A DNA stretch of 37,241 nucleotides from Klebsormidium nitens (lineage: Eukaryota > Plantae > Klebsormidiophyceae). Below the pieces are notes generated by a model. The model was not told the origin of the DNA, did not search any database, and saw nothing but the letters and a program-made list of their open reading frames with translations. The number at the start of each line of letters is the position of its first letter. Positions within the stretch are counted from its first letter, which is position 1. The stretch covers positions 1 through 37,241 of the forward strand of contig DF237517.1 in assembly GCA_000708835.1 (NCBI GenBank), written 5' to 3'. Both the position numbers and the translations under genes were made by a program. Shown piece by piece: positions 11,460 through 37,171 of this stretch.

Positions 11460-11472
11460 GAGAAAATCCTGC

Positions 11473-19349: not shown

Positions 19350-21313
19350 CTGAAGCTAAGAAAGCTATGAAGGTCACATCAACGGTAGTCTGACCAAAGC
19401 CGCCCACCTTGGAGGCCCTTTGCAACTTGCTGTTGCATGTCTGATCTACCATCATCTGGAGGCTTAGACGAAAGGCTTGAAGCTGCATATACAGAGGATT
19501 TGCAATCAAATTTGGTTGGTTCCGGAAGAACAATTGCACATGACAGCTGGAGCTACTTCTGCTGGCAAAAACTGCTTGGGGATTGGGCACAGGAGCAGCA
19601 GGAGACTGGAACACGAGAGCCCAGCATTAGCAGCGCAGCTTCAAGGCCAAGCTTTTAAGGTGCACAACACAATATGGTGATGTGTCTCTCACCTTGCATC
19701 CTCACCGTCATGAGACCCTGGCGCGGTGACCTCACCAACCCAGGCTTGTTCAAGAGCAGTCTGTTTACCGAGGTTCTGGACAGCCCTGTAGCAGATGAAC
19801 ACGGCATGAGTCAACCGCAATTTCTAGATGACACACTCAGGAAGGGATTTTTAGAGACAACAGCACATGCATTTTGCTTCAACACCTGCATGCGTCCAAA
19901 TTTCAAAAGGTGGTTCTGGACGGAGTTGATGGCATTGCCACAGCCCTGGTCACCTCATTCTGAGCGCTGTCCACTGCACCTGCGCATGGGCTCATCGAAC
20001 CAGCACACAACTCAGGCATGACCATAATGCTGCCGCTACTTTTACAGCTGCTCAGCCCAGACAGGCATAGCAATGATTGCTGACCTGGACGATGCTTCTC
20101 TGCGTATCCTTTTACTTCCAAGCTCAGTATCTTCTAAACATTGTGGGTCCCACTCTCTGCCGGGCTTGTTTCTCCAAATCTATCAATCGTCATCCTTGCT
20201 AAGAGACCTCTGATTCTAAGGAGGTCTCCTGGTGTACATGAAGAAAATATCGAGACGATGAAGCCAATTTCTTCCGCCAAGCGTAAAATGAGATAAGGCT
20301 CCTTCAGCCCTCTTTGAGCTGAGTATCAGATGTGTGTCCGAATTGTCACCGCTCAGAAGATGGCAACTTAGCAGAAGCTGACCGTCCGCATAACAATGCA
20401 GTCAACCGCTTGTGCACCTTCTCGATGGCTCTTCCCTTTCTTTTGCATCTACCACTTTACTCAACTTAAAACAAGTAGGTTTGTATTACCATCCTATTCC
20501 TAGTCTCCCTTGCTCCATCAAAGTGACCCAGCATGAAGAAAAGCCCTTGACAAATGACAGCACTTCCTACGCTCCGTTACTTAATCACGTAAACCAGCAA
20601 ATTCTGCTGCTACCAATCATCCTGAAATTCAAAATGAAGCTCATTGCCCACTCCTGTGGAAGCACCAAGAGGCAATCTGCAGTCTCTGCGCCTCACAATA
20701 CTTGCACTTCCGAAAGCAGCTTTCCACGCTCCCAAATCCCCCCAAAGATCTCCTGATTAGCTGGTTGAATTGAGCAGACACTTCAACAAAAGAGACATAG
20801 CCTTTCCAAGAAACAGACCCAGCTTCCTCTGGCTACTATGATCTTTCCGAAATTCACAGAACATAGTCCTCCCAGCCCAAGCGTTCATGGCACTAATATC
20901 AGAACAAATCCTACATCCAAGATGAGGGTGCAACTGCCACGCCCTCTGCGGAGCTTCCTCTGGTCAGCGGCTTAGGCAGACCAAAGAGTAACACTCTGGG
21001 GTCAACACCTGATGGAAAGGGACAATACCAGAAGAGCAGCAACTAGCAGGTCTTTCAAGAGTGGAGCTCACCAGCAGGGCCTTGACCTTCTCTCCTGACA
21101 TTAGTTGTGAGCTGCCCGGGCAGGTCTCTTGCTGAGACTTGTTTGCTGGGCCCAAAGGTCCGCCTCTCCTCCAAACCCTTTGCCGGGGCCCACGTGGGAC
21201 GAGCTGCAGTTGTCATAGCCCTACGTAAACGCTTGAGTCCCTGCTTTGGGTTTTGATCTAGGTGCTGGTGCTTCTGTTTTATGACAGGAACTCTTCAAGT
21301 CCGTGCGATGAGG

Positions 21314-21659
21314 ACCCTTCTTCATTGATGCTTCTTCCTGTCGCTCAAGTCCTCCTTTGAATGCCTAGGTATTTACTAATATTCACTGCAAAGGAAGTAA
21401 CTTTGTTATTGGACTGAAGTTTGAACGGAGAGCACAAAGCTTGCGACTTTCAAGGCGCAAGCGCCACAGCAACGGGCGGAGCAGGAGAGGCGAACTTCTT
21501 CAGTGAAGGGCAGCACCTTCATTGCAAACCCTAAATTTGAGATAATCTTAAAAACCTGATGGTACCGTAGTTGTGCCCTCAGTTCCGACACTTCTAGTTA
21601 ATACTGTAAATACCTAGGCATAAGGACTTGAGCGACAGGAGGAAGCAGGGAAGAAGGGT
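21314..21659. mobile_element. MITE-like element with about 60-nt imperfect inverted repeats
   Basis: 21336-21353 and 21623-21640 are an exact 18-nt inverted pair, and 21361-21376 and 21606-21621 are an exact 16-nt inverted pair. No target-site duplication seen. Confidence 0.55.
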
Positions 21660-21689
21660 GCCCCAACTATCCAGATCCGGCATAAAACC

Positions 21690-22090
21690 GCCCACTCCCG
21701 TGCCGCCACGTGTCCCCCCGTCCGTCCCGGCCGGGTGGCCTCGATGGATCGCTAAGGGTCCCCGTCCCGTCCCGACCCGCTCCGGAATCGAAAAAGCCAT
21801 GTAGGTACGCAAGGCATCTGGACAGTTTTGGACTTATACGTCGACGCAAGCCAGGCCCTCACATTGCACCACGTGGAAGCACGTTCAAAATTCCGGAGTT
21901 TGCCTTCGTATACGTGGTCGAATGTCTGGGCTTTCTGGTCGGACCGTCCCGACCGGACCGTCCCGTGTGGCAGCAATGCGGGCCTATAAATTCCAAATTT
22001 CCGAACGTAAATTCTCATTTCCAGCATCCACCGCCCCAACCAAGGTCCGAAGTTCCGAATGTATAGCCTCATTCCCAGCATCCATCAGCA
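21690..22090. repeat. GC-rich segment with clustered CCGTCCCG-type motifs and a duplicated CTCATT(T/C)CCAGCATCCA
   Basis: Motif clusters near 21715-21780 and 21940-21966, and a short direct repeat near 22015 and 22068. Confidence 0.45.
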
Positions 22091-22451
22091 GAATAAGCGA
22101 GCTGGCCGTCGCTAGAGTGCAGCTCAAGGCAGAGAGCAAGACCGCCGAGCTGTCAGCTGGGGTAGCTTCCTGTGCGTCCTCTGTGGGTGGTGCCTGTGCG
22201 GCCGGGACCTGTTCTTCTGTGGCTGGACCATGGTTAGTTGCTCAGTCCGATCATCATCTTGAGAAGGTGGCCAGAGCATAAGCGGCCCTGGCAGCACAAG
22301 CACCCCAAGTTGACCCCCGCTCTAATTCTTCAGAATCCAGTGGCAGCTTGCAAGCAAAGGGGGCCTGCCATCGCTGGGAATTGCACTTGCGCCCTTCTGG
22401 CCCGTAAAAACCGCGCTTCTAGACAGTAAGCTTTCAAGTTTCCATGTAGGC

Positions 22452-22904
22452 ATGGCCGAGGTGGTTTCCGTTGATCTAGGGTTGTTGGAAAAAACTTGTG
22501 CACGGTGCGGAAACAGGTCGCCTAGAAGCATTCTTGCGACTCAAAGCGTCTTTCAATCTGACAACTTCCGGTCCTTTCTCGTCTATCAGGAAAGTGGCGG
22601 TTCAAGCAACGAAGCTGTGTCCGACGGAGAGGACATAGAGGACGTGGAGTTCCACCAGGAGGAAGAGTCTTCTGACGAGGAGACCTCGCAGGACCGGGCG
22701 TTCAGGAATGATTCGCCTCAACCACTGGGCCGTTCCCCAGTCAGTGTGTATGCTGCAATGGACGCAGAGCTTTGGCCGTCAGACACAGAGTCGGGCATGC
22801 AGTTGGGGGGGCGCAAACGAAGCGAGCGGGGAGAAAGCGATCAGAGCACAGAGTTGCAGCTACGTGGGAGGGGTCGTCGCCGGGTGGTCATGTCTTCACT
22901 TAAG
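22452..22904 (+). CDS. Hypothetical acidic low-complexity protein with CxxC, runs into an assembly gap
   Basis: ATG at 22452, CARC motif, D/E-rich middle. Confidence 0.4.
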
Positions 22905-22927
22905 NNNNNNNNNNNNNNNNNNNNNNN
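22905..22927. other. Assembly gap (N run)
   Basis: Run of N. Confidence 1.
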
Positions 22928-23124
22928 TTTATTTTCATCTAAAGATTTTCTCCGAATAAACATTTATCAGGTAAGAGGTTCCGTTTCTGCACGCGCCGCC
23001 AATCTGGCAAAAAACGGTGACAACTACAACAAAAAAGGTGACAACCACAACTCAAGAGACCATTTGTTTCACAATTGAGTACAGAGAACCAGCCTACCCT
23101 ATTTCATGCAAATGTTCGTCAAGT

Positions 23125-23421
23125 TCAGAACTCATTCCGGGCCGCCTTCTGCTTGCCCGTCAAACGTTCAGCCCTACTTTCATTGGCGAGACTGGTGTTG
23201 TTCGTGACAGATCCTGCAACCTGCTTTGCCGTTCCTGCAACCTTGTCGCCAGTGGCCTCTGCCTGCTTCCGAGCCTTTGCAGCGTCTATCTCTGCTTGCC
23301 CCTTCTCACGCTGTGCGGCACCCTTGCTTTTGAGGCGATTACTGAAAACCTTCCCCGTGGCTTCTTTTGAAGCTCCGACGGCCTTGTCAACATAACCTGA
23401 TGTCTTGTTGGACGTGGACAT
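23125..23421 (-). CDS. CsbD/LEA-like small hydrophilic stress protein (98 aa)
   Basis: A/K/G/T-rich with the pattern DKAVGASKEATG...EKGQAEIDAA...DKVAGTAKQVAGSVTNN, resembling CsbD-like and fungal HMP1-like proteins. Confidence 0.7.
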   Translation of the reverse strand: MSTSNKTSGYVDKAVGASKEATGKVFSNRLKSKGAAQREKGQAEIDAAKARKQAEATGDKVAGTAKQVAGSVTNNTSLANESRAERLTGKQKAARNEF

Positions 23422-23450
23422 GCTCAGCTATATGTCAAGGAAAAAAATGT

Positions 23451-24277
23451 TCAGAAGGCGGCACACGTGCAGTTGCATTGAAGGCGCTGCCGATTATCTT
23501 GCAAGGTCATCCGCCTGCTCTCTGGTGCTCTCAAAGTACTAGAGCTCTGCTTACAAGCGTACTCTCCGCCGACCCATCCCATTGGGACACAGTCGACGAG
23601 TTCGACCTCGCTTTTGGGGTCGCTCATCACGAGCTTCACGGAGATTGGAGCCTGAATCTGCCCGTTGTGGACGAAGCTCGTGCCCCAGTCACGCTTTAAA
23701 GGGACGTAACTGCCCGCAGGCGAGCGAATGAGCATCGCATCGTACGAACCCTGGCCGGCCAAGTTCAGAACTCGAAGGGACTGCCAATAGGGAGTGCCTT
23801 CGATCGATACAACAGGAGGCCCCACTCTCTTGCAATGCACTCTGCGGTATTGCAGTGCAAAGTGGCCGATCGCCATCGTACTTACCAGCTCGCTGAAGGC
23901 TTTCCCAGACAAGTCGAAATGATGTGCATCGGCACCACACCACTGCTCGTTGCCCTGAGTCGGGCAATAGTCGGTGATCGTAACCACGACGGACCTGCCA
24001 GTACATACGGGATTTCCTAAGCACTTGATCTCGTAGCATGCCCCGCAGTTTGCACCGCCCTTGTAAAGCTGATCGCTGCCGGCTGCAAAGAGAGGGCCGT
24101 AGGTCGCCCCCTGGATTCCAGCAATGCTGCGGCTGAGGTCACTGAAGCCGCATTTCCAGCATAACCGCCGGACACGTCATCAACTCCCGTATAGTAAGTA
24201 GCGGTCCCTGCCAGCCAGCCCGGCTCCTGAGAAACTACGCAGCTGGTTAAAGATAGGAGCACAAAGAAGAATATCAT
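23451..24277 (-). CDS. Intronless expansin (signal peptide, DPBB domain, CBM63-like domain) with one apparent -1 frameshift at 24153-24155
   Basis: MIFFFVLLSLTSCVVS signal peptide, then ATYY, (G)KCGF, YG...AAGS..LY.GG..CGACYEIKC, VTITDYCP, HHFDLSG.AF, YRRVHC and RDWG. Adding one A to an AAA run gives a 275-aa ORF. Confidence 0.9.
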
Positions 24278-24314
24278 CGTTCTGCAATACGGGTAGAAAA
24301 AGTGACAAAGAGCA

Positions 24315-24596
24315 TCACCGTTTGTAGGTGGCTGCAGCGAGCTGCATGGCATCCTTGTACGTCTTGCCAAGCGGTTTGATGTCATCGTAAACACTCTTCA
24401 CGTGGTCTAACCACGCCTGGAGTTTAGGATTATTGATGGCATTCTCGTGCCTTTTCCGAGACACAATGGTCCTGGACTTTCCATCATGAGTCGCGTACAT
24501 GAGGTCCTTCTTTTTGAGGCCCGATGAGGTGTGGTCCTTCTCAGACTTCATGACCTGCCTCCTCTCTAGTCTGTACTTTTTGATGTGCGATGCCAT
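24315..24596 (-). CDS. DVNP: DVNP-like (dinoflagellate/viral nucleoprotein) basic protein, 93 aa
   Basis: RRQVM...HTSSGLKKKDLMY...TIVSRKRH...LQAW..V matches the recalled DVNP pattern R.QV...T.GGL.K.DL...IVSKK...AW. Confidence 0.75.
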   Translation of the reverse strand: MASHIKKYRLERRQVMKSEKDHTSSGLKKKDLMYATHDGKSRTIVSRKRHENAINNPKLQAWLDHVKSVYDDIKPLGKTYKDAMQLAAATYKR

Positions 24597-24679
24597 TCTT
24601 TTTGATTCGCTGTGCAATGGCATCACAAAAAAATTGGGACGAGAATTTTGCACTCTGTTTTTCCTGGACAGTATGACAG

Positions 24680-25876
24680 ATGGAATGGAGCCGACTCGTT
24701 GCAGCAGCCAGCGCTGGGGACGGGATGGCAGTCGACCACCTGATCGAAGCACGCTTGAAGGGGGAGCTTCCACCAAGCGAAGAGCAGGCCTTTGAAGAGA
24801 GTTGCTTCCTGTATTGGTTCCGTGATGGGCCGTATTCTCAAGAGGCACGGAAGAATGCAACCTCTCATGACCCCGAGGAGAGCAACCTGAGCCGTGACAA
24901 GAATGCCAGCCGTATGGACTTTCGGTTCATAGAGGCCTCCCACATGTCACGGCTCCTCGGCCTCGGTTTGGAAGGGTCCTGGGACGTCTCTGTGACTTTC
25001 CACCCCCACAGTTCGAACAAGGTTCGTGTCCATATTGTTGAGGAGCCTGAAGCCCCAAAAGTTGATTGGTACGCCCAGTCGCGTGCTTGGCAGAGGTCTG
25101 GATACAAGCTCGTGCGGGAGTGGAAGCGGGCGAGGGTGGCGAGCGTGAGGCAGAACCTGTCGATGCAAGCCTTTCAGAAACGTGGGCAGCTCGCGAGGAG
25201 CGTGAGCTACATCATCCAGTGTTTCAGTTCGACTTCCAAAGGAACGTCAAGAAGCGCCGTGGCTGACCTGACCCTCAAAGCTTCGCTCGGAGAAACAGAC
25301 GAAGAGGATCCTGGCAGCAGTACAAACATCTTGCGCGTGCTCCTCTCTGCCACATGTACAGCAACAAATGAGTTGGGCGGACAGGTGAGTCACAGGGGCC
25401 AGATCGACCTCTACGGAGGCAGCTTTTGCAGCTTGGCGGATTGGTCGGTCAAAGAGTCTGCAAAGTTGGACGTTCCCGACAGCTGTGATGCTCATCATGG
25501 TGCGTCCACCCTGAGATGTAACCGACTGGATGACCTCTCGGGAGTTGGGGACGTGTCCGACATGCAGCTTGACACGATGTGGCTTCTCCAAGACAAGGGG
25601 ATGCACACTTTTCGGGCATCGGTCAAGCACGAGCTTGAGGTGGCACGAGAGAGCCGCAAGAGTAAGCTGCTAGGCCGGGTCTCTCGGCTGTTCCAGGACC
25701 CCGTGTCATCGGTCCTGTCGGTTTCCAATTCTCTGTCTGTGTATGTGACATGTGATCTGTCGTTTTCCGACTTTCTCAACAAGCTGGGTATGATGCGGCG
25801 TGTGAGGGACCAGGCACTGAAACCCAATCAAGGAATCCAGCGCCTGACAAACGTGGGGGCCTCTGCACGTTTTTAG
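24680..25876 (+). CDS. Hypothetical protein (398 aa)
   Basis: Long intronless ORF divergent from DVNP. Confidence 0.65.
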   Translation: MEWSRLVAAASAGDGMAVDHLIEARLKGELPPSEEQAFEESCFLYWFRDGPYSQEARKNATSHDPEESNLSRDKNASRMDFRFIEASHMSRLLGLGLEGSWDVSVTFHPHSSNKVRVHIVEEPEAPKVDWYAQSRAWQRSGYKLVREWKRARVASVRQNLSMQAFQKRGQLARSVSYIIQCFSSTSKGTSRSAVADLTLKASLGETDEEDPGSSTNILRVLLSATCTATNELGGQVSHRGQIDLYGGSFCSLADWSVKESAKLDVPDSCDAHHGASTLRCNRLDDLSGVGDVSDMQLDTMWLLQDKGMHTFRASVKHELEVARESRKSKLLGRVSRLFQDPVSSVLSVSNSLSVYVTCDLSFSDFLNKLGMMRRVRDQALKPNQGIQRLTNVGASARF

Positions 25877-25903
25877 GGGGTCGCAAAAGTCCCGAGGCTT
25901 CTC

Positions 25904-26467
25904 ATGGAGATGACGCCAGCTTACAATGGCCAGGAGGACTACTCGCTGCTGGAAACAAAATCGATCAGCGACTGGATGTTTCTCGCAGACCTGCCCGATG
26001 CTGCCGCATTTGCCAAGGCTTCTTTGGAGGTCGATCGCCTCCTGAAGCCCTTGCAGACAGAGCAGGAGGCCTGTGGAAAGGAGGTTGCAGAGGCCCGTCG
26101 GAGGCTGTCAACGTTCGAGGAGGGTTTGTCCCGGGTCATGAATCACGTGCATGAGGCCTCCGCCATCGAAGTCATACAAAGCCTTGTCAAAGATGTGAAG
26201 AACGGGCTGGAAAGGGACTTGACTGAGAAGGTGCTCCGGTTGGAACAGATACATGCAAAGCTGGCTGCTTTCTACGAAGTAACAAGCAAGATGAAACGGG
26301 CAATCAATCCTGACATGTGTGGGGAGTGCCCGGTCTGCACTCACGCTCAGGTCAGGCTTGCAATGATTCCGTGCGGTCATTGCATATGTGACGAGTGCTA
26401 TCGAGGCCGGAGCGTGTGTCACTACTGCCGCAGCCTGGTTGAACGGGCATTGCGGATCTATCTCTGA
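25904..26467 (+). CDS. Coiled-coil protein with C-terminal C3HC4 RING finger (putative E3 ligase)
   Basis: CPVC...PCGHCICDEC...CHYCR at the C-terminus. Intronless. Confidence 0.85.
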   Translation: MEMTPAYNGQEDYSLLETKSISDWMFLADLPDAAAFAKASLEVDRLLKPLQTEQEACGKEVAEARRRLSTFEEGLSRVMNHVHEASAIEVIQSLVKDVKNGLERDLTEKVLRLEQIHAKLAAFYEVTSKMKRAINPDMCGECPVCTHAQVRLAMIPCGHCICDECYRGRSVCHYCRSLVERALRIYL

Positions 26468-27362
26468 GCCAAGGGTGATCCAAGGCTTCCCTCGCTGTCG
26501 CTCTCGACTCGACGTTCCTGTTGAGCAGCCGTTTCAGAAAGTCTTTTGCGGGCAGGCTGAGGTCCGCATTGTCAATGTCAGGCTCGTCCCTCAGCACGGC
26601 CTTGAAGATCTCCGAGTCCGTCCTCCCAAAGAAGGGCCGTGTTCCGATCAACAGGATGTATGTCAGGACCCCCACGCTCCACTCGTCTGCCTTGAGATTG
26701 TAGGCCTGCTTTAGGACTTCTGGCGCGACAAAAAATGGGCTCCCCACTACTTCCTTGACAGTTTCGTTCTCTTGACACTTGTAGGACAGACCAAAGTCTA
26801 TTGCTTTTATGATGTTGTCCTTCTCGTTGGCAAAGATGAAGTTTTCAGGCTTGATGTCCCGGTGGATCACGTTCTTCTCATGCATGTAGGCAACTGCCGT
26901 GAGGATCTGCCACACCAACTCGACCGCGGTTGCCTCCTTGTATGGCCCCTGGTTGCTGAGGATGTCATCCATCAGCTCGCCACCTTGGCATAGCTCCATC
27001 ACAATGTACACGTTCATCAAGTCCTCGTAAGCTGCCATGAACTCCACTATCCCCTCGTGGCCTGACAGCAGGCTCAAGATCTGGACCTCTCTGTGAACGT
27101 CCATAATGGCGGCCTCACTGATCATGGAGCTCTTTGGGATGATCTTCACGGCCACAGTGCCGCCCTTTTGTGACTTGGCCTCTGCGATGTGCGTCCTGCC
27201 AAAAGATCCGCGACCAATCTCCTCCTTGACCGTGTACATGTCCTTAAAGTGCCGGTTGAACCCAAAATCTTTGTTTGCCAGGGTTGTCCTTGGAACAGTC
27301 TGCTCTGGCGATGGTTCATCCTGGGTCTCATGATCTCTTTGCTTCCCGATGCACAGCCCCAT
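26352..27362 (-). CDS. Intronless CDPK-related Ser/Thr kinase (CRK-like) lacking the C-terminal regulatory domain, 336 aa
   Basis: MGLCIGK acylation motif, DFGFNRHF, GRGSFG, VAVKIIPK, DVHREVQIL, VYIVMELCQGGEL, HRDIKPEN, KAIDFGLS, VGSPFFVAPEVL, RPFFGRTDSEIF and HPWL. Confidence 0.9.
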   Translation of the reverse strand: MGLCIGKQRDHETQDEPSPEQTVPRTTLANKDFGFNRHFKDMYTVKEEIGRGSFGRTHIAEAKSQKGGTVAVKIIPKSSMISEAAIMDVHREVQILSLLSGHEGIVEFMAAYEDLMNVYIVMELCQGGELMDDILSNQGPYKEATAVELVWQILTAVAYMHEKNVIHRDIKPENFIFANEKDNIIKAIDFGLSYKCQENETVKEVVGSPFFVAPEVLKQAYNLKADEWSVGVLTYILLIGTRPFFGRTDSEIFKAVLRDEPDIDNADLSLPAKDFLKRLLNRNVESRATAREALDHPWLRDRSAMPVQPGCGSSDTRSGLDSTRHICNDRTESLQA

Positions 27363-27369
27363 GTGCCTC

Positions 27370-28140
27370 TTATACCGCTGTATTTTCTCCAAAATGCAGC
27401 TCATAGATGCATGTAAAGAATTCCTGAAGGCCACCGAACCAGGGAAGGTGGGATTCTGCCGTGACCAAGTAGAACCTCCCATCGTGCTGTACGACACAGG
27501 TGGGGTCTGTGATGGCCCGCTCGAGCTGGGCCTCCACCTCTGCAAAGCTCATCTGCCAGCTCTTTACATCCAGCCGCCATACAAACGGGTTGTGTTTGAC
27601 CTCGCCCTTGGGGCCTGCCGTCGTACGGTGTCCAAAGCCGACGTAGACACGGTCGTCGACCGGGGTCTTGTAACCAGGGGTGCCACCGCGCAGGCTGTAG
27701 TCCGGGCTCTCCTTCCGGGCCCTGACTCGCCTCCAAGTATCGGGGTAGGGCGACTCGGTTGTAGACAGCACGGTCAGGGGTCGGAGCCACTCGATGCAGA
27801 GGAGCTCGTCGCCGTGGGAGATGAGGCTGAGATTCTTGCCCTTTGAGGGAAGCTTGCACGGTCGGAAGTTGTCAGCTGGCACGATCAAGCTGCTGCTGCC
27901 CCAGGTGTTGTCCAGCAGGTAGTCCGTGCCCTTGTGTGAGATGCACCTCGGGTCCTCCCCAGGGCACGTTTGGCCGAAATCATGCACGATGGTCCAGCCA
28001 CGTGGGTCAATCAGGCAGCGGCCCAGGATCCTCTGGTCGTATCGGAGCCGATAGAAAGAGTCAAACATCCCGGTCGCGTCGCTTCGGAGTATGTAGAAGA
28101 TAGTGCCCGGCGGTGTAGGCACTCGGGCAGTGTTCCTCAT
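27370..28140 (-). CDS. Putative five-bladed beta-propeller glycoside hydrolase/transferase (GH130/BMT-like)
   Basis: GEDPR, GKNL, LRGGTP and GFGH motifs in the expected order. Confidence 0.55.
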   Translation of the reverse strand: MRNTARVPTPPGTIFYILRSDATGMFDSFYRLRYDQRILGRCLIDPRGWTIVHDFGQTCPGEDPRCISHKGTDYLLDNTWGSSSLIVPADNFRPCKLPSKGKNLSLISHGDELLCIEWLRPLTVLSTTESPYPDTWRRVRARKESPDYSLRGGTPGYKTPVDDRVYVGFGHRTTAGPKGEVKHNPFVWRLDVKSWQMSFAEVEAQLERAITDPTCVVQHDGRFYLVTAESHLPWFGGLQEFFTCIYELHFGENTAV

Positions 28141-28240
28141 TGTGATGCCGCGGATGCAGTCGGTTGGAAGCATGAGTGTCCTGTAGGCTACACAGGAGAA
28201 ACGGCCACCGATGGACCGCACGGATTCAGTTCCGGCTCTG

Positions 28241-29914
28241 TTACTTCCATCCTATCCCGGTTGACGTTACAGTTGGCTTGTTGGCATTGTTGTTCTTGGA
28301 CACAAAAGGATTTTTGCTGGTGTTTGTCTGGTTGAAGCCGTTTACGGCCATTGCTTTTGACAAGTTCGACCCTCTTACTGCCTGAGCTGCATTGACAGAT
28401 TGCCCAATGTTCTTGGACACGAAAGGATTTTTGCTGGTGTTTGTGTGATTAAAGCCGTTTGCAGCCATTGATTTTGAGAGGTTCTGCCCGGTGAGCGCTC
28501 TTACAGCCTCTGCGGCATTTGCGACTTGGACACCGTTCTTTGCACCAACCACGCTCTTGGTATTGTTCTGGATGGTGTTTTGCAGAACTTTACTCGGAGC
28601 TCCCGCCTTCTTTGCAATATTTTTAAGCCCTTCCTGACCGGTTGCTTGCAATCCGTTGCCAATGAGGGCAACCTGCGTTGCTGCTAACTTGGAAGCGTCA
28701 TGGTCGGGTCTTTGGTTGAGCTGCGACCTAGCATTGTTGCTATTGAAGTTTGCAAAGTTGGGAGCATTGATTGCTTTTGCCGCCAAAACCACTGCATCAG
28801 TGGGGGGCATACCACCGGTGGGAGTCGTTGCATTCTGCGCTACTGCAACAAGCACGTCCGATGGGTTTCCTGTCTGTGCAGCACTTGCAATGCTTTCGTG
28901 ACCTTCCTTAGAAGCTACGAGGTTTTTCTTCTTCAAGGCTGTCGCAACCGCCTCAGGTGTCATCTTTTCTGGTTGATGAATGTCCTTGACGGCTCCAGTG
29001 ACTGCATTCACTGGAGGAGGGGCCCCATTCGTGGTTACAGCCGCGTTCGCAATCGCCTTTGCAGTGCTCTCTTCTCCCAATGGTGTGCTTTCAGCAACGA
29101 GGCGTTTGCCATCGGCGGATGCATCCAAGCCGTTGTTCTTTAGCGCAGCATCAACCTGCTTGTTGACCCGCTTGTTCTGATTGGCAACCCAGCTCTTCAT
29201 ATTGCCTTTACCTTTCTCAAACGCGTCCTTGTTCATGAGAGGAACCCCGTTGGCAATGCGCTTGTCGAGTGTCCGATAGTCGGGGTGCATAAACCGACCC
29301 GTCAAGGTAGTCCCAAAACGGTGATTGGCATTCCTATACTGATCAACATCTTCGAGATTCACCTTTGACCGATAAACTTTTTTAAGGTTCAGGTCATCAC
29401 CTACGTTTGCTGGGTCGTAGAAGATGTGAGTCTGACCGTCCTCTTGCGCGTCAGGAAGGTTTTTTGTGTTGAAGTCAACGTAATCCGGGTTGAGCGAGAG
29501 CCGGTCAGGCGGAGGGCTCAGACGCGATGGTGTTAAGAGTTTGCTCACCACCTTGTAAAGGCTAATATCGCCACCCTGTGCCAGAGTGCCCCTCTCTTCG
29601 AGGATCTTCCGCATCACGAAGCTCAAGCGGGCGCTGCGGGTTGCCTCGCTTGCCGCGTTGTAATCGTTGCCGTCCAGAGAAACGACGAGTTTGCCATCTT
29701 TGACAGTGATCTTGGCCTTTTCATTGCTCTCGTACCCTGGTGGGTGCTCAATGTAATTCACGAGCTCCCTTGCCAACTCGTCCAGCAAATCCTGCACGTG
29801 CTTTTCATAGTACAGAAAGGTATCACTGCCATATTCGTGCTTCGTAGCCTCCGATTGTGCGTCACGCAACTCCATCAACCACTTGTCTACAAAGTCCCCG
29901 ATCGTCACTTGCAT
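28241..29914 (-). CDS. Asn/Ala/Lys-rich protein with duplicated C-terminal repeat, possible virion protein
   Basis: 557-aa intronless ORF. NLSK(S/A)MA(A/V)NGFN(H/Q)TNTSKNPFVSKN occurs twice. Confidence 0.7.
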   Translation of the reverse strand: MQVTIGDFVDKWLMELRDAQSEATKHEYGSDTFLYYEKHVQDLLDELARELVNYIEHPPGYESNEKAKITVKDGKLVVSLDGNDYNAASEATRSARLSFVMRKILEERGTLAQGGDISLYKVVSKLLTPSRLSPPPDRLSLNPDYVDFNTKNLPDAQEDGQTHIFYDPANVGDDLNLKKVYRSKVNLEDVDQYRNANHRFGTTLTGRFMHPDYRTLDKRIANGVPLMNKDAFEKGKGNMKSWVANQNKRVNKQVDAALKNNGLDASADGKRLVAESTPLGEESTAKAIANAAVTTNGAPPPVNAVTGAVKDIHQPEKMTPEAVATALKKKNLVASKEGHESIASAAQTGNPSDVLVAVAQNATTPTGGMPPTDAVVLAAKAINAPNFANFNSNNARSQLNQRPDHDASKLAATQVALIGNGLQATGQEGLKNIAKKAGAPSKVLQNTIQNNTKSVVGAKNGVQVANAAEAVRALTGQNLSKSMAANGFNHTNTSKNPFVSKNIGQSVNAAQAVRGSNLSKAMAVNGFNQTNTSKNPFVSKNNNANKPTVTSTGIGWK

Positions 29915-29943
29915 CCTCTATGTAACCAATGCCACAAAATCTT

Positions 29944-30687
29944 TCAGACTGCGAGTAGCTCTTGGTAGTGCAGCAATGCTGTTTTGAACAGGGTCTCGGC
30001 GAGGCCACCGAGCACCTCAGCATCCATGCGCAGGACAGTGCGTTCCCTTGCTGCGAGGCCCTCTCTGCGGGCGACACTCGCTGCTTGCGTGAAGCGCTTG
30101 AAGGTGAACCACATCCAGCCGAGGGACTTGTGGAAAGCCTCAAGCTTCAACCTGCTCTTCCACCAGACGTCTGCTGCCTGCTTGTAGCAGCGGCGCCTGG
30201 CAAACGCAACCAATGGGAGGCTCCTAGAGAGCCCTGAGAACTTTGCGGCGTGGATCCCGCAGCTCTCTATGAGGTACATCAAGGACGATCGGATCTCCCC
30301 GAGCGGCTGGTAATCGGGCTCTTCCGACAGAGAGTGCGGGTTGAGGTACACGTCAACAGGCTCGAGGGCCGCCATTGTGCAATAGAGGTACTGCATGACG
30401 ACGGCCAGGCGGGCGATTGCATCGTAGCTCACAGCCTTCCATTGCAGAGCATATTGCAAGGACAACTCCGCAACTCGGACGTCATCCTCGTCGGGCTTGC
30501 AGTACCATGTGTAACGAGTTATAGCGCGCAGGTCCTTCATGATGGCATCCATGCTGGTCTTCTCCGTGATGTCAAAGTCGCGCACTCTTTGATTTGGTGA
30601 GACGTTGAAGTGTTTCATGCAGTACCGGTCGTGTTTCTGGTACACTCTCTCACTACACGAAGCATCAGCACACACGCCAAAGTCCAT
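29944..30687 (-). CDS. Hypothetical protein with N-terminal C-x4-C-x10-C-x2-H motif
   Basis: ATG at 30687, 18 nt downstream of the TOP2 stop. Intronless. Confidence 0.6.
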   Translation of the reverse strand: MDFGVCADASCSERVYQKHDRYCMKHFNVSPNQRVRDFDITEKTSMDAIMKDLRAITRYTWYCKPDEDDVRVAELSLQYALQWKAVSYDAIARLAVVMQYLYCTMAALEPVDVYLNPHSLSEEPDYQPLGEIRSSLMYLIESCGIHAAKFSGLSRSLPLVAFARRRCYKQAADVWWKSRLKLEAFHKSLGWMWFTFKRFTQAASVARREGLAARERTVLRMDAEVLGGLAETLFKTALLHYQELLAV

Positions 30688-30705
30688 ACCAAGCAACCAG
30701 GCTAT

Positions 30706-33700
30706 CTATGCTCCGATTTTCCGCGCTCTCTCCAACTCAAGCAGGTCTTCCTCCCACAGCGCCGAAGAAGTGTTGCCCTTGAGGAGGTCAAGGGCTGACG
30801 CCAGGGCCTCTTTGGCCGCCAAGAGCCTCTCCACCTCGTCCACCGTCAGGCTCGACAGGGGGAGCGACATGAAGCGCTGATGGTAGGCCTCGGGGATCCC
30901 TGCCGCGCTCATGTCGGCACGGATGTCTGCCACCTTGGCTTTCAGAAGTCGGACACCCCCATCGAGCACACTCGTCACAAAGAGCGCCCGGTAGGAACAG
31001 GCAGCCAGCTCCTCTTCTTTTGCTCGGATCAGGTGCAGCAGGCGGCGTTCGTAGAGGCTCAGCCGCACCCCAAAGAACTCCCGCAGGATGTCGGTCACGG
31101 TCTCAAACCGTCTTATGTGGCCGTTCGAGTCGAACAGGTGCATGTTGTTGGTGCTCAGCTTCCTGGTGAGGCAGAGCTCCTTCTCGATGTCAGGCAGGAT
31201 AGTCTCGAGCCTCTCGGGGCTGAACTCCACGGTGAAGTCCACAATCGTGTCCGTGCATTCGTTCTTGATGGACCGGGCCCCTAGCTTGTCGCTCTCCAGG
31301 AAAGCCTTGTAGGCGTCGATCGACGTCCCGATTGGCAGCTCCGTGATGCGGATGCGGCTGCTGTCGAGCCTCTCGTAAACCCCGGAAACGACGTACTCCC
31401 CCTTTTCAGACTCCCGGACGGTCCCCTTGAAGCCAGCCCAAGAAGGGTGCATCTCAATCGGGTCGAGGCCTCGCAGCATTGCCCGGATGTTGGCAATGAC
31501 GTCCTCCAGCGCGTGGTTGGGGACGTACGTGGAGAAGCCAGTGCCGATACCGGAGGCACCGTTCAGGAGGATCAAGGGTACGGTCGGGACAAAGTAGGCT
31601 GGCTCTATGGCCTTGCCGTCCTCTTCAAGGTAGGTCAGGAGGGGGCCGTCGGCAGGGTGGACAGCGCAGAGTGCAGTTGGAGTCAGGTGCGTGAAGAGGT
31701 ATCTCGGCGCGGCACCTGCGACCGCCCAAGTTGCTTCTTGAGGGGCTGTCTGCGCTTCTCTTGCAGCTTTTGACGTTCGAGATAGTCATTGGCACTGTAA
31801 AAACATGCAGAAAGGGCGGCACCGTGAGCTGCAAGACATGCAGTATCCTGTATGCCAAGCACCTTGGTTGTCACCACAGGCCTGTAACATGATGCAAGGG
31901 TGGCGCCCACCAGTGACCTGCCTGACATGCTGTCTTGTATTGGCACGCAGGTTTTGAACACGGCTCGGATGCAGAATACTCACTGTCCTTCCCGTTGGCC
32001 AGGCGCGTCCCGAACATCCCGACCGGTTCGAGCAGGTTGAGGTTGTTGGATCCCACAAACGTCTGCGCCAGGTTAATGATGGCGCCGCTCAGACTCTCCT
32101 CCCCTATGACAAAAGTAAGCTTTCACCCGTCAGATTCTCGACCCTCTCAATTTTCGAAAGGTTGTCTGACGTCAAATATGCAGAACATTGTAGTCAACTG
32201 CAAACTTGCGCACGTACACGGATGGAGCGCAACTTTCAAAAGTATTTCAAAATCTGGGACCTAGTAAATTTGACTATAGGAGGGGGGTTGAAAACACTTG
32301 CTCATGCGCGCATGCGTGTTGTAGCCATGCCGGTAAGGATAAACCAAGACTTTGTAGTTCACAGCATGCTACAGCCATTCCAGTAAGAAACAGAGGTTTG
32401 TAGTTTACAGCAAGCTCACGCATATACACGGATGGAGCGCAACTTTCAAAAGTATTTCAAAATCTGGGACCCCCCTTTTTTGACTATAGGAGGGGGGTTG
32501 AAAACACTCGCTCATCCGCGCATCTGCGCAAGAGGTTCGCCTCTCACCGTGATGGTATGCACTTCCCTCTGCGACCGCCGCGGCTAGCTGGGCCACCTTG
32601 AACTCCTCCCGAACGTTTCTTTTGATGCTGACGTGGATGATCTTCCTCGTCGAGGGTTTCAGACCGTCGATTGCACTGGGGATGGAGCGGCGGACATCAG
32701 CAATGGAGTAGTTGACAAGCTCGGTGTCCACCATCTCTGAGAGGGTCACCCGCTCGCCTACCGGCTCCGGCGCTGGGTTTGCAATCGCCTCAACGATCCA
32801 CCTCTTCCTGTCGTTTGCCCTTGCCTTTTGAAAGGCTAGCTGCATGGCCGCGGCCGCCCCGGGGTCCGTTGTGTACGTGACCTTGCTCATGTTGCTGAAG
32901 ATCTCCTTGGCATCCTTGGCGGTGGACGTGCCCAGACCTGCATCGCTCAGAAGCTTAGGAAAGTGCTCTTGGGGCAGAGCGTCAAGAAATATGGCAATGG
33001 TGGCTCGCCTGGAGACGCTTATCCAGGTGCCCGCTCCAGATGTCAGTCGACAGAAGGTCAGGATTCGTCATGATTTTGCTGCTGGAACCATCGAATTGCT
33101 CACCGCAGACACAGCCATCAGAGCTGGGCCTTCAAAGATTGCATACCTCAACTATCAGCTCTTCGAGACAAGTGCATACATAAGCCTTATGGGTGTTTCC
33201 AAACCTTTCCGGGGTATGGGATTTTCGTTCCTGCTGCTGAACACCGCACTCGCGCACATGTACTCCCTCGGTGTCAAGGAAGTGCAGCTCTTCTGTTATC
33301 CTTTAGCCGAAGGGCAGCAGACAGGCGAAGACGCACACTTGAGCAGACTACAGGCCCTCTACACGCGTTACGGTTTCCAACCAGTCCAAGACGAGAGGGA
33401 GAGGTTGACGGGTCCCGAGAGGTACCGAGTCCCTGGAAGTTCGCACCTTTCAGGAACTTGATTCGCCAGGCACCACGGGCCTCGCTCGTCTGTGCCCACT
33501 CCCTGTACTGCCGCTCCGTGAAGAACGCACGCGTCAGGCTGCTCTTGAACGCCCTGACCACGTGGGTCCTCAGGTGCCACGCAAACCCCAGCTGCAAAAG
33601 AATCCTTGTACTTTCGAATGGAGGAGACGGGGACAGCGGCAGACAAAGGCACGAGCAAAGACAAGAGTGCGGAGAACCAGCATACCATTGTCAGAGAGCC

Positions 33701-35332
33701 TTCGTTGGATGTGTGGCTGACCTCGATAAGCTCCGGCCAGCCAAACTCGACAAAGTTGAGGAAGAGCGCTCGGATGTGCGTGCCATCGCAGTCAGCATCC
33801 GTGAGGAGCATGACTCTCCCGTAGCGCAGCTCCAAGAGCGACTTGTACTTGTGGCCCTCTCGGAGGCCCAGGATCTGCTTGAGGTTGGCAATCTCCTTGT
33901 TCTCCGCAATGGCCTTGATTGGGGCGTCCCTGCAGTTGAGGATCTTCCCCCGCAGCGCAAAGACCCCGTACAACTCCCTGCCAACCACAGAAAGCCCTGC
34001 CATGGCGAAAGCACGAGCGCTGTCCCCTTCCACCACCAGGAGCGTGCATTCGGAGCTCCGCTTGCCACCCGCTTTGTTGGCATCCTCCAGCTTGGGGATC
34101 CCCCTGATGACGCTCGTCTTGTTCCCGTCCGTTCGTGACAGAGTCTTGGCCTCTCGCTCCCTTGCCTTTGCAATGATCGCGTCGGCAATCCCTAGCTTGC
34201 CCACCACCTTTCCAACCACCTCGTCTGGCACCTCGCACGTGCTCCCAAAGAGGCTGGCCTTTAGCGTGCACATCTCCTTTGTCTGAGAGCTGAAGGTGGG
34301 GTTGACGAGCGTCGCATTCACAAAGAGCATCAGCTTTTCCTTGACATGTGCTGGCCGGATAGTAGCCCCCTTCACCTTGGCCTGCAGCATTTCGGCAACC
34401 CTCCGGGTGAGCGGCGCAACCACGTGCTCCACGTGGGTGCCGCCCAGAGCCGTGTGCACGCCGTTGACGAACGAGATGGCTTGGAAGCCGTCCGCGGAAG
34501 CAGCTACACAGACCTCCCAGCGCTCGTTTGGGCGGAAGAACACGCGCGGCGCCTCCTTCTTGCACCCGATGAACAGCTCGCAGTAGCTCTCAAACCCACC
34601 CTTGGACGGGAGGTTCTTGCCATTGAAAGACACCCTCACGCTCGGACGCGTGCAGGCTGCGGCGTCGTGGGCCCTCCGGTGGAGGAGGCTGACAATCTCG
34701 TCGTTCAGGCGTTCCATGGAGAAGACAGCGAGGTCGGGTTTGAAGGAGATCTTGCAGTAGCCGTGCTTGGGATTCTTGGGGCGTGAGATCTTTGGCGGCT
34801 TGCACTTGGACATCCCGTCCTCCCAGACCTGGCAATACTTGAGCCCTCTCTCTAGGTCCAAGGTCTCAACAGCAAAGGATTGGCTGAAGACGTTGGTCAG
34901 CTTGGCCCCGTACCCGTTGCGCCCGCCGGTGGTCCGCTCCTCCGAGTCATCATAGTTTGAAGAGGTCAGGAGGTTGCCAAAGATCAGCTCAGGTATGTAC
35001 ATCTTGTAAGAGTCGTGCTCAACCACGGGGATGCCTCGCCCGCTGTTGGCCACGCTGATAAGCCCTGCCTCCACATCAACCTCAACCTTGATGGAGTCGA
35101 CGGTCGGGTCCACCTTTGTCTGGTCGATCGCGTTGACCAGGATCTCGTCCACAATCTTGTAGAGGCCAGGGACGACAGTGATCTCCTTCTCGATGGCGCG
35201 CCCTTCCTCGATGACCCAGGTCTTGGTCTGCTCTGGGACAACGGACCCTACATATGAATCTGGTCGAGTTCGGATGTGCTCGATGGGGGTGCAGCGCCTG
35301 TAAGTTGCTGAGACCTGAGCAGTCGAGGCCAT
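30706..35332 (-). CDS. TOP2: Type IIA DNA topoisomerase, short viral type, 1091 aa after splicing; exons 35332-33722, 33591-33447, 32937-32548, 32103-31984, 31715-30706
   Basis: [38 protein letters not shown]|LGTS, DGLKP, YHHG|EESL and KDS|AAPRY (catalytic Tyr at 31701-31699). Four GT-AG introns restore the frame (3276 nt). No eukaryotic C-terminal domain. Confidence 0.95.
32215..32523. repeat. About 99-nt direct repeat x2 (32215-32313, 32425-32523) inside TOP2 intron 3
   Basis: TACACGGATGGAGCGCAACTTTCAAAAGTATTTCAAAATCTGGGAC...TTGACTATAGGAGGGGGGTTGAAAACACT occurs twice, 210 nt apart. Confidence 0.95.
32991..33461 (+). CDS. GNAT-family acetyltransferase nested antisense in TOP2 intron 2 (156 aa)
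   Basis: Motif [21 protein letters not shown] and motif B LYTRYGF. Confidence 0.75.
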   Translation: MAMVARLETLIQVPAPDVSRQKVRIRHDFAAGTIELLTADTAIRAGPSKIAYLNYQLFETSAYISLMGVSKPFRGMGFSFLLLNTALAHMYSLGVKEVQLFCYPLAEGQQTGEDAHLSRLQALYTRYGFQPVQDERERLTGPERYRVPGSSHLSGT

Positions 35333-35551
35333 CTTGAATCTGAAGGAACATTCTGAGCGACAAAGGCAATATGAAGGAGGAGAAGTGTGGCCCTAGATGA
35401 GTGCAGATGGCAGCCTGTGGCGTGCAGCAGCCACGGCCTGCCTACCCATGCCCGACTGCGCCAGCTTGAAGTCCATATAAAAGGCCGATTTGAGGGTGTG
35501 AATCTTCATTTGAAGAGTTTCACCTTTTGTGAAACTCTTTGCCTTTCTTCC

Positions 35552-35848
35552 AAGGGACCTTGCATACATACATATTGGCAAGCATCGGGGGGAACCAAAA
35601 CTCTTATACTATAATCTGTTATAATTTCTTTCTTCTCCGGAGAAGGAATTATAACAGATACGTAGTACAGAGTTTTCCCTTTGGTCCCCAATTGCCAATA
35701 TATATGTATGTAAGGACATACCCCCAAAAGATGCAATATTGTAATTACCTTTTCAGAGAAGAGAATATAACAGATTAGTAGTACAAAGTTTTTCAGTAGG
35801 ACTCCAAACGCAAATATGTATGTATCTAAGGCCATACCCGGAAGAATG
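35552..35848. mobile_element. Foldback/MITE-like palindrome (about 160-nt hairpin at 35554-35716 plus a partial tandem copy)
   Basis: Centre CTTCTCC|GGAGAAG at 35638/35639. ATCTGTTATAATT pairs with AATTATAACAGAT, AAAACTCT pairs with AGAGTTTT, and 35563-35580 pairs with 35693-35710 (1 mismatch in 18). Confidence 0.7.
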
Positions 35849-36238: not shown

Positions 36239-37171
36239 TCATCTCAAATTTATAATCTGGTGTTCCTCAATCGCTGATCTCAGTGCAATGTTCGGCATAA
36301 GTTGTCTGTCCTCCTTATTGAGCCGCCGACCACTTATGGGGCACTGATTATGAGCTTTGAACCAGCTCTCGATTGAGCACTTGTCAAATGTTGTCCTATT
36401 GCTAATCATAATGTGCGGATCCTTCATTATCTCCTTGGATATGGGGCAGAGAAAAGCGTTCAAAACACGCTCACAGCCCTGCTGTTCTACTAAGTTTTCA
36501 TCGTCCTCATCTCTATGTCTCACTTGGTCTTTCAGCACAGCATTCTCTGACCTCAGCTGGGCCACCTGCTTCCTGAAGTGCTGCACATCTTTGCCCATCT
36601 TGCACTTCTCAGCATCCAAAAGCTCCCTCACTCTTTGGATGTCCGCCTTCAAACGTTCTTCCCTGTTCTGAGCAGCCTCCCATTCCACCTGCATTTGGTG
36701 AAGCTTTGCCTCCAACAGATGCTTCTCCTTCTCCACGTCATCCTGCAGCTGTGTCTCCCTAGCCTCGTCTTCACTACGCTGTGCTAAATTTGTCAGCACT
36801 GTTTCCACAACTTGCCTGACAGTCTCTGCATCATCTCTATCTTTGCGGGGATGCTCAACTCCTGCAACATCCAAAAGCGCTGCAATGTTGCAGATAGCAA
36901 CACATGCATTGTCTAACTTACGGGGTCTTGATGTACAGTCTTCTACCAAAGCTTTTGCACGTTGCAACTCCCGTTCAAATGGTGTTCTACTTATACGTAG
37001 GCTGACCTTTCGGAATGTCCCCGCCAAAGCACCTTCACCCAACGCTCGGTTCGCATCTTCAATGAAGGTGAGCCGACCTTCACCATTTGCCTGGCGCATC
37101 CAGGCCCCCGCTTCTCCACAGGAAGCAGCCATGCAATATGAGCAGCGGTGACAAGGCGTCATTGAGGGCAT
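36239..37171 (-). CDS. Coiled-coil plus C-terminal U-box protein, probably the last exon of a host gene
   Basis: FLCPISKEIMKDP...TFDKCSIESWF...CPISG...LMPNIALRSAI preceded by heptad-rich sequence. Confidence 0.85.
   Translation of the reverse strand: MPSMTPCHRCSYCMAASCGEAGAWMRQANGEGRLTFIEDANRALGEGALAGTFRKVSLRISRTPFERELQRAKALVEDCTSRPRKLDNACVAICNIAALLDVAGVEHPRKDRDDAETVRQVVETVLTNLAQRSEDEARETQLQDDVEKEKHLLEAKLHQMQVEWEAAQNREERLKADIQRVRELLDAEKCKMGKDVQHFRKQVAQLRSENAVLKDQVRHRDEDDENLVEQQGCERVLNAFLCPISKEIMKDPHIMISNRTTFDKCSIESWFKAHNQCPISGRRLNKEDRQLMPNIALRSAIEEHQIINLR

Follow-up and report, generated by a model that had tools for sequence, protein, structure and literature searches.

A conserved viral gene module with plant-type cargo, kept under purifying selection, in the Klebsormidium nitens genome assembly

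Multiple divergent phycodnavirus-like NCLDV inserts in Klebsormidium flaccidum/nitens were reported by Gallot-Lavallée & Blanc in 2017, and passages of that study describe NCLDV core genes, plant-type expansins lying in viral regions and read as captures for crossing the cell wall, viral contigs mostly devoid of host junctions, and a public annotation that contains chimeric gene models (PMC5294986). Endogenization in Klebsormidium has also been cited in later papers. In green algae, a latent giant virus carrying intron-bearing genes, the punuivirus of Chlamydomonas reinhardtii, resides in the genome of its chlorophyte host, where it is integrated, expressed and productive, and a subset of its genes is interrupted by spliceosomal GT-AG introns (PMC13692296). 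Phaeoviruses, including EsV-1 and the Ectocarpus endogenous elements, are latent nucleocytoviruses with DVNP homologues and differ from the element described here in their brown-algal hosts (PMC13236599, PMC11953307). DVNP genes are widespread among Algavirales and Imitervirales, and the protein is packaged into virions (PMC11953307).

The window analysed here comprises bases 1-37241 of scaffold DF237517.1 of Klebsormidium nitens (NIES-2285 assembly), the assembly used in 2017, and is very probably part of one of several distinct Nucleocytoviricota (phycodnavirus/Algavirales-like) genome copies in it; whereas the punuivirus is known to be productive, this element is known from sequence alone. 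The 2017 study was anchored on the core-gene contigs DF237168, DF237869, DF237607 and DF237785; its main text names neither DF237517.1 nor DF237677.1, for which one supplementary file also had no match, and in its passages expansins neighbour VLTF3, whereas in the window the neighbours are DVNP and CsbD (PMC5294986). A preliminary description had presented the locus as a candidate for an undescribed system, but NCLDV inserts, captured expansins and the wall-crossing idea appear in those passages for the same genome, so that this kind of element was already reported. What is new relative to them is the DVNP, the truncated plant-type kinase and a TOP2 gene with four host-style introns; these, the GNAT gene nested in TOP2 and a selection analysis are absent from the passages, which were picked by terms other than DVNP, kinase and topoisomerase (PMC5294986).

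Between positions 23125 and 35332 genes take up 98% of the sequence and are separated by -116 to +83 bp, bearing out the viral spacing originally proposed; the block holds four ORFans and genes for CsbD, an expansin, DVNP, a RING protein, a CRK-like kinase and a TOP2 lacking the C-terminal domain (CTD). Its bounds had been placed at 22452-35332, of which the right-hand part stands, the interval 22452-23078 falls outside the block, and virus-type DNA continues beyond both ends, to the left as a cap N7-methyltransferase gene and ORFs up to 11862 common to the sister copy, and to the right to at least 35839. The order TOP2-g250-g557-g283-kinase-(RING)-g398-DVNP-expansin is kept in the relatives L004, L005 and L006, and gene order is shared with a second K. 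nitens scaffold and three metagenome contigs; the one assembly contains two or more divergent copies, 83-90% identical in nucleotide sequence. IMG/VR and the metagenome-contig collection yielded no relatives, and the metagenome relatives may for their part be copies endogenous to related algae. The block is a conserved viral gene module kept under purifying selection: between the two K. nitens copies, dN/dS is 0.11-0.30 at dS 0.19-0.70 in all 14 segments, ORFans included, and 11 of the 12 block genes are intact as single ORFs or splice models, the exception being the expansin with one frameshift. On these two grounds the earlier label of a fossil was abandoned. A decayed remnant of an ancient infection, with genes drifting neutrally as relics in the host genome, could accommodate that frameshift, the loss of the N-terminal part of TOP2 from the sister copy, the splitting of the element by an ORF-poor 11.3-kb segment and the published methylation of K. 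nitens viral genes, but it is improbable given the intact genes, the low dN/dS and the retention in TOP2 of 130 of 136 near-invariant columns.

The streptophyte-type cargo first described was recovered in two genes. The plant-type two-domain expansin (23451-24277, minus strand; Pfam Expansin_C and DPBB) has a signal-peptide-like N-terminus; in the window copy the frameshift divides it between two frames, with no stop within the matches, and in L004, L005 and L006 one ORF spans it. Both domains of the intact sister-copy expansin matched Phl p 1 / EXPB1 (1e-19), placing it closest to plant beta-expansins. The second is a CDPK/CRK-type kinase of 336 aa (26352-27362, minus strand; Pkinase, 2.7e-65), whose top PDB match is ‘Calcium-dependent protein kinase 3’ (8e-64) and whose nearest cellular homologues are land-plant CDPK-related kinases (CRK; 47-55% identity). 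It shares with plant CRKs the N-terminal MGxC acylation motif, kept in 13/13 relatives, but ends about 35 residues past the kinase domain, without the autoinhibitory and calmodulin-like regulatory region by which CRK and CDPK are defined. The CsbD-like small basic protein (98 aa; 23125-23421, minus strand; Pfam CsbD, 1.5e-9; 87% identical to the L006 copy) was identified as expected, yet belongs to a general stress-protein family; with this, the missing regulatory domain of the kinase and an unverified propeller glyco-enzyme, a plant-specific toolkit was an overstatement. The predicted DVNP-like gene encodes a basic protein of 93 aa and pI 10.1 (24315-24596, minus strand), which matches PF19060 (E 8e-11) above the gathering score and was aligned across five copies; its ORF has 100% identity to KFL_005680060 of K. 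nitens.

The kinase has a conserved partner in the ORFan g398 (24680-25876, plus strand), which is 56-91% identical in L004-L006 and has homologues at 35-40% in L008, L009, L012 and L007, adjoining or near the kinase. In L008 the kinase and g398 occur together 3.2 kb from an NCLDV minor capsid P8 gene, and in L012 they occur together with an EsV-1-7 repeat protein, a likeness to phaeoviruses by gene content alone. For g398 itself there was a weak UBC-like hint (E 0.016) and an unusable AF2 model. The RING-finger gene, also anticipated (187 aa; 25904-26467, plus strand; zf-C3HC4_3, 2.2e-5), is convergent to the kinase gene, overlaps its 3' end and has orthologues in L005 and L006. The other ORFans are g250 (about 247 aa; 29944-30687, minus strand), conserved in all copies, 51-93% identical to L004, L005 and L006 and without a match in Pfam, PDB or IMG/VR; g557 (28241-29914, minus strand; relatives at 32-71%), with a conserved N-terminal half, a repetitive, Ala/Asn-rich C-terminal half and no match in family searches; and g283 (27370-28221, minus strand; relatives at 59-86%). 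The last had been called a propeller glyco-enzyme, a name that finds no backing in Pfam or PDB even at E<=1 or among IMG/VR sequences, while a single-sequence AF2 model, mostly of beta strands, was unusable (pLDDT 34).

TOP2 (30706-35332, minus strand) was delineated by Pfam, PDB and a splice model as a type IIA DNA topoisomerase with GHKL, GyrB, Toprim, TOPRIM_C and topoIV domains and, as first noted, no eukaryotic C-terminal domain. A single open frame is ruled out by its five exons and four GT-AG introns (130, 509, 444 and 268 bp); the predicted product of 1091 aa contains no internal stops, aligns with an intact viral TOP2 of 1114 aa over residues 1-1081 of the latter and has human TOP2B as its top PDB match (1e-149). 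For the sister copy, which lacks the N-terminal part, the NCBI model also has four GT-AG introns, intron positions and phases are identical in the window, L004 and L005, and the four introns are common to every close relative; they follow the extended consensus GTRAGT...TGCAG, and an Rfam search found no self-splicing intron. Antisense within intron 2 lies a GNAT-type acetyltransferase ORF (32844-33461, plus strand; Acetyltransf_1, 4.4e-4), with antisense homologues at the equivalent place in L004, L005 and L006 and another in L011 (2e-18), and a dN/dS of 0.29 against the sister copy. The topoisomerase II of PBCV-1 has about 1060 aa, and the window protein resembles the chlorovirus type in size and domain set, but differs in its four spliceosomal-type introns and nested gene; the searches recovered no named chlorovirus sequence. 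TOP2 is the one intron-bearing gene seen in the window, in contrast to the gene subset of the punuivirus (PMC13692296). Such host-type GT-AG introns with the algal-style TGCAG acceptor, together with the purifying selection and the host-like GC, would also be expected of an old viral insert co-opted by the alga and maintained by selection on it. Domestication of this sort is nevertheless quite improbable: selection acts on every gene of the dense block, including ORFans specific to the lineage and a DNA-packing protein of virion type, there are several divergent full copies rather than one conserved locus, and distant relatives of TOP2 and the kinase/g398 pair are located among capsid and replication genes.

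The viral affiliation of the block, as initially proposed, is supported by the TOP2 tree together with the synteny and the kinase pair near P8. The window, the three metagenome copies and P0003-P0006 form one clade at 100% bootstrap, and on the P0003 contig TOP2 adjoins a D5 primase-helicase; the next relative, L001, has PolB, a C962R-type primase and minor capsid P8 and P9 genes as neighbours. The deeper backbone of the tree is poorly supported, a clade restricted to CTD-less enzymes having a bootstrap of 17-25%. Profile searches for the core markers suggested earlier (capsid, PolB, A32, VLTF3) and for D5 found none inside the window. The missing capsid gene, and the existence of mirusviruses that are rich in introns and carry TOP2 and ribonucleotide reductase (PMC12768974), would fit another large DNA element, but the probability of this is very slight: the relatives carry PBCV-type P8 and P9, D5 and the C962R-type primase, reports of DVNP come mainly from Imitervirales and Algavirales (PMC11953307), and the capsid genes of K. 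nitens were typed as phycodnavirus-like in passages of the 2017 study (PMC5294986).

To the left of the block, the virus-type DNA includes an mRNA cap guanine-N7 methyltransferase (238 aa; 9826-10542, minus strand; PF03291, 4.5e-23), 92% identical to the L006 copy, which is placed just past CsbD, and two ORFs common to the sister copy (10593-11862, plus strand), the first (10593-11459) with a weak F-box match. Blastn colinearity delimits an 11.3-kb segment missing from the sister copy (11809-23123), with few ORFs, a 78-bp tandem repeat, a 23-N gap and a multi-exon STAND-NTPase-type NCBI gene model (nSTAND3 exon at 18911-19213, minus strand). ORF 22452-23078 lies in this segment and was for that reason excluded from the block; its frame exists only through the 23 N, and it has no family match and no counterpart among the relatives. 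The block, beginning at 23124, is unaffected by the gap. No host-virus junction occurs within the window, and the 2017 passages record one on a single contig, DF237168 (PMC5294986); together with scaffolds of 60 and 40 kb that are short, densely viral and host-like in GC, this would suit viral DNA that was free or episomal and was sequenced along with the culture, rather than integrated DNA. That explanation is unlikely, since at least two divergent copies occur in a single assembly, the five to six divergent core-gene copies in the published passages are unexpected from one infecting genotype (PMC5294986), and the STAND-NTPase-type model is found in the window copy only, in a segment whose left junction lies in contiguous sequence, not at the N gap.

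For a nucleocytovirus of this kind, gene content suggests that TOP2, the cap methyltransferase and a ribonucleotide reductase encoded just beyond the window edge would serve replication and mRNA capping, and the DVNP-type protein viral DNA condensation. The secreted expansin may loosen the cell wall when the virus enters or leaves, and the kinase, probably held at the membrane through its MGxC motif, could act constitutively on the stress and calcium signalling of the host because the calcium-sensing regulatory domain is lost. Host ubiquitination might be redirected by the RING, F-box-like and U-box proteins, the last (310 aa, with a coiled coil; 36239-37171, minus strand; U-box, 9.4e-12) being 36% identical in its N-terminal part to an ORF on the virus-like contig L012 (4e-13), and CsbD may confer stress tolerance. 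The shared TOP2 introns point to transcription in the nucleus and use of the host spliceosome, which would fit a temperate or latent lifestyle, as in phaeoviruses and the punuivirus, rather than a decayed fossil. At the scaffold start, an open frame (1-1980, plus strand) encodes RNI-type leucine-rich repeats (LRR_6, 4e-48) followed by a DUF900 alpha/beta-hydrolase domain (1.2e-9), and contains a 93-bp tandem repeat.

The conserved block, a dense giant-virus-like gene module at window positions 23125-35332, is 98% covered by genes separated by spacers of -116 to +83 bp, a spacing of viral type as proposed in the preliminary description, and the DVNP, CsbD, RING, protein kinase and TOP2 genes named there were likewise recovered by Pfam and PDB matching. 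CsbD (23125-23421, minus strand; Pfam CsbD, E 1.5e-9), a domain also listed for annotated gene models, is followed by a two-domain expansin (23451-24277, minus strand) and by DVNP (24315-24596, minus strand). The DVNP protein, with 93 aa, 22 K+R residues and a pI of 10.1, matches Pfam PF19060 above its gathering score (E 8e-11; 42.7 bits against a curated cut-off of 25), and the K. nitens protein KFL_005680060, from a 60,194-bp scaffold, is 100% identical to the DVNP-bearing ORF. The window corresponds to bases 1-37241 of this scaffold, DF237517.1, in the same numbering. Searches with DVNP yielded close relatives only. DVNP homologues occur mainly in Imitervirales and Algavirales, and also in virions (PMC11953307). 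The plant type of the expansin was borne out: Pfam identified both the DPBB (D1) and the CBM63-like (D2) domain, a hydrophobic N-terminal leader is visible in the translation, and the intact sister copy, on K. nitens scaffold DF237677.1, showed alignments to Phl p 1 and EXPB1 that cover D1 as well as D2 (1e-19), the window copy carrying one frameshift. The RING gene (25904-26467, plus strand; Pfam), for which no record was found by exact-sequence look-up, the protein kinase gene (26352-27362, minus strand; Pfam) and the TOP2 gene (30706-35332, minus strand; Pfam domains and a PDB match) lie further to the right. The window contains two N gaps (7066-7552 and 22905-22927), the second of which falls within an ORF at 22452-23078 that is open solely through N read as X; no family was matched by the stretch to the left of the gap, and related loci contain nothing equivalent to either side. 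This gap is immaterial for the block because the conserved sequence begins 197 bp to its right, at 23124.

The viral affinity of the block was assessed through TOP2 and its relatives, among other genes. The protein carries GHKL ATPase, transducer, Toprim and WHD/tower domains with their conserved residues, as in type IIA topoisomerases, and lacks the eukaryotic C-terminal domain (CTD). An unbiased HMMER search returned CTD-less forms as the nearest TOP2s (55-56% identity), whereas eukaryotic long forms did not exceed 49%. A neighbour-joining tree built from 168 sequences over 537 columns, with 100 bootstraps, placed the window TOP2 with three metagenome copies at 100% support, and this group was then joined by four related proteins (P0003-P0006), also at 100%. 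The following 21-24 sequences were all CTD-less, with clade support of 17-25% and a backbone without resolution. A D5 primase-helicase adjoins P0003, and the next TOP2 relative, on the virus-like contig L001, is surrounded by PolB, a C962R-type primase, RFC, TBP and the minor capsid proteins P8 and P9. The kinase and the ORFan g398 recur linked on two further contigs, on L008 with a P8 minor capsid gene and on L012 with an EsV-1-7 repeat protein. No capsid, PolB, A32, VLTF3 or D5 gene was found among the non-overlapping ORFs of at least 130 aa in the window, a 37-kb fragment; genes of this kind have been reported from other contigs of the K. nitens genome (PMC5294986). D5, PolB and P8/P9 genes neighbour homologues on L001, L003 and L008. 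Judged from its sequence, the block is viral, as first proposed on the strength of its gene content. CpG depletion gave no contrast between viral and other DNA, and tRNA and Rfam scans returned no tRNAs or Rfam families. Scans of IMG/VR with g283, g250, DVNP, the kinase and g398 yielded no relatives, nor did metagenome-contig scans with DVNP and g398 alignments, in a collection evidently without the samples holding the metagenome copies L004 and L005.

The block had been described as the fossil of a virus, a reading that is contradicted by the comparison of its copies. Scaffold DF237677.1 is colinear with window positions 23124-35839 and 9832-11808 at 83-90% nucleotide identity, and three contigs of JGI sample 3300060284 retain the gene order of the block wholly or in parts. 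When the K. nitens copies were compared with each other, dN/dS was 0.11-0.30 (dS 0.19-0.70) in 14 of 14 segments, ORFans included; between the window and the metagenome copies it was 0.05-0.38 where dS could be estimated, dS being saturated in that comparison. Every block gene in the window is an intact single frame or splice model, with the expansin as the sole exception; in the sister copy, TOP2 lacks its N-terminal part. The evidence of selection indicates that the copies diverged under selection rather than as dead DNA. The TOP2 introns of the two K. nitens copies are 86-89% identical, approximately as expected for neutral sites, and we infer that the copies probably diverged mainly as replicating genomes in which the introns were already present.

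In the NCBI model of the sister-copy TOP2 (P0162), four canonical GT-AG introns separate five exons. The window and two metagenome copies likewise have GT-AG at these four positions, in phases 0, 1, 1 and 1. Peptides spanning the junctions were identical at 22-41 of 41 residues, with a single case falling below 31. All 16 introns across the four copies have GT-AG ends within the extended contexts GTRAGT and TGCAG, which the intron search did not require and which fit spliceosomal introns. Consensus, positions and phases, as read from sequence, thus agree with spliceosomal introns, and no self-splicing fold was detected. An intein or group I intron was ruled out, as the flanking exons lie in different frames and Rfam returned no self-splicing intron in TOP2. 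A broken pseudogene was also discarded, the interruptions being GT-AG introns common to relatives. The window exons, joined unaltered, give a stop-free product of 1091 aa, which is colinear with a viral TOP2 of 1114 aa, itself intact, over residues 1-1081 of the latter. Of the 136 columns with conservation of at least 95% across 60 full-length TOP2s, the product retains 130.

An antisense GNAT ORF fills TOP2 intron 2 in all copies, down to a copy with a TOP2 identity of 62%. The more distant the relative, the fewer the introns: a 62%-identical TOP2 has interruptions at all four positions, as seen on contig L011; at about 53% an interruption occurs at the intron-2 position alone, with an unrelated same-strand ORF; and at about 45% none of the four is interrupted. 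Intron gain can be ordered across the relatives from none to one to four, which bears on the nuclear adaptation of large DNA viruses. The 53%-identical TOP2 lies on L003, a GC-rich contig with D5 primase, where a basic 278-aa same-strand ORF (7437-8273, plus strand) sits within an 889-bp interruption at the intron-2 position; its homology to the GNAT ORF was rejected, as the two show no similarity. Aquaporin-type (MIP) genes are found a few kb from TOP2 on two related virus-like contigs (L003, 843-1550; L011, 1860-2609).

The kinase is a second case of plant-type content. Its closest cellular homologues are land-plant CDPK-related kinases (CRKs; 47-55% identity), and the motifs VAVK, HRD, DFG and APE are visible in the translation. 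It had been named a CRK kinase, of which the catalytic domain stands and the regulatory part does not: the 336-aa protein (relatives, 284-338 aa) consists of the catalytic domain only, which is followed by about 35 residues up to the stop, and lacks the C-terminal autoinhibitory and degenerate calmodulin-like domain. Because this regulatory domain is missing, the protein is best described as a CRK-derived catalytic domain rather than a CRK. All 13 relatives share an N-terminal MGxC, an acylation signal typical of plant CDPKs and CRKs, and the kinase would be predicted to be membrane-bound and calcium-independent.

Four further conserved genes of the block (g250, g557, g283 and g398) are ORFans, with no family found in Pfam, even at E<=1, or in profile searches against the PDB, where the sole hint was a weak UBC-like match for g398 (E 0.016). 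The gene previously described as a propeller glyco-enzyme, g283 (27370-28221, minus strand), has no Pfam or PDB match; its single-sequence structure model had a pLDDT of 34 and, like that of g398, was too poor for a fold search. The C-terminal end of g557 (28241-28700, minus strand) carries repeats of an Asn-, Ser- and Lys-rich motif some 35 residues long, and this gene diverges much faster in its C-terminal than in its N-terminal half. The weakly UBC-like g398 adjoins the RING gene, and three ubiquitin-ligase-type genes lie in the 37-kb window: RING (25904-26467), a U-box gene (36239-37171) and a weak F-box match (10593-11459). In the public K. nitens annotation (L010, DF237517.1 16352-38140, and L006, the sister copy), adjacent viral genes are fused into models of 2596 aa (RNR and TOP2), 739 aa (g250 and g557), 541 aa (g283 and kinase), 436 aa (RING and g398) and 229 aa (DVNP, expansin and CsbD), a concern for every user of the K. 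nitens reference proteome.

No host-virus junction was found within the window, and the signs of chromosomal integration are indirect, namely the multiple divergent copies and a multi-exon gene model in the window copy. This model, of STAND-NTPase type, lies in an 11.3-kb segment (11809-23123) that has few ORFs and stands in place of a 91-bp spacer in the sister copy. The left junction of the segment is in contiguous sequence, the right side rests on a 23-N scaffold join, and no LTR, TIR or target-site duplication was found at its ends; conceivably, the segment is DNA of host type acquired after endogenization. JGI samples 3300060284 and 3300060285 hold at least six distinct related contigs (L002, L004, L005, L007, L011 and L012), with TOP2 62-83% identical to that of the window, which suggests either numerous inserts in a related alga or a swarm of viruses related to one another. 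The contig diversity of this sample pair parallels the multi-copy state in K. nitens.

Contrary to the earlier supposition, the block is not undescribed as a system. Gallot-Lavallée & Blanc 2017 reports several divergent phycodnavirus-like inserts in the same K. nitens assembly, with DNAP on five contigs and with six MCP, six ATPase and five VLTF3 genes, and junctions missing save on DF237168 (PMC5294986). The same study records two expansins on viral contigs, interpreted as captured for wall crossing, and remarks on chimeric gene models (PMC5294986). Klebsormidium endogenization and the methylation of its viral genes are cited by later papers, and a 2026 description of a latent giant virus of a green alga includes spliceosomal introns (PMC13692296). 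A literature search found no paper on DVNP and Klebsormidium together. What appears to be new is the DVNP-expansin-CsbD-kinase-TOP2 module and its conservation in environmental sequences, together with a putatively acylated kinase without its regulator and an intron-bearing TOP2 with a nested GNAT. The published picture is thereby extended by a conserved cargo (expansin, the regulator-less and putatively acylated kinase, ubiquitin-ligase-type proteins, CsbD and DVNP), by evidence of selection during the divergence of the copies and by a replication gene with host-style introns.

It is conceivable, if rather unlikely, that K. nitens and related soil algae in the metagenomes host a still-functional temperate giant-virus lineage whose essential genes are adapted to nuclear expression, an adaptation suggested by the spliceosomal TOP2 introns, the oldest of which holds a nested gene. 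If so, streptophyte algae, which are sister to land plants, would have their first known virus lineage of this kind. To our knowledge, giant viruses infecting streptophyte algae have yet to be isolated, and such elements are therefore the sole view of the viruses of land plants' closest algal relatives.

Several minor features were recorded in the rest of the window. An open frame runs from the scaffold start (1-1980, plus strand); its 93-bp tandem units, at least six in number, specify leucine-rich repeats of RNI type (LRR_6, 4e-48), and a DUF900 alpha/beta-hydrolase domain comes next in the same frame. Two neighbouring ORFs lie at 2870-4141 (plus strand), the second with a weak match to glycosyltransferase family 11 (E 1.2e-3), which may be a component of a virus-encoded glycosylation set. 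A 40-bp tandem repeat (9653-9764, 2.8 copies) occupies the spacer next to a cap methyltransferase gene. Inside the 11.3-kb segment, a 78-bp tandem repeat is present at 15248-15477, and a STAND NTPase P-loop exon (18911-19213, minus strand; nSTAND3, 3.5e-6) belongs to a multi-exon NCBI model that also matches Cwf_Cwc_15.
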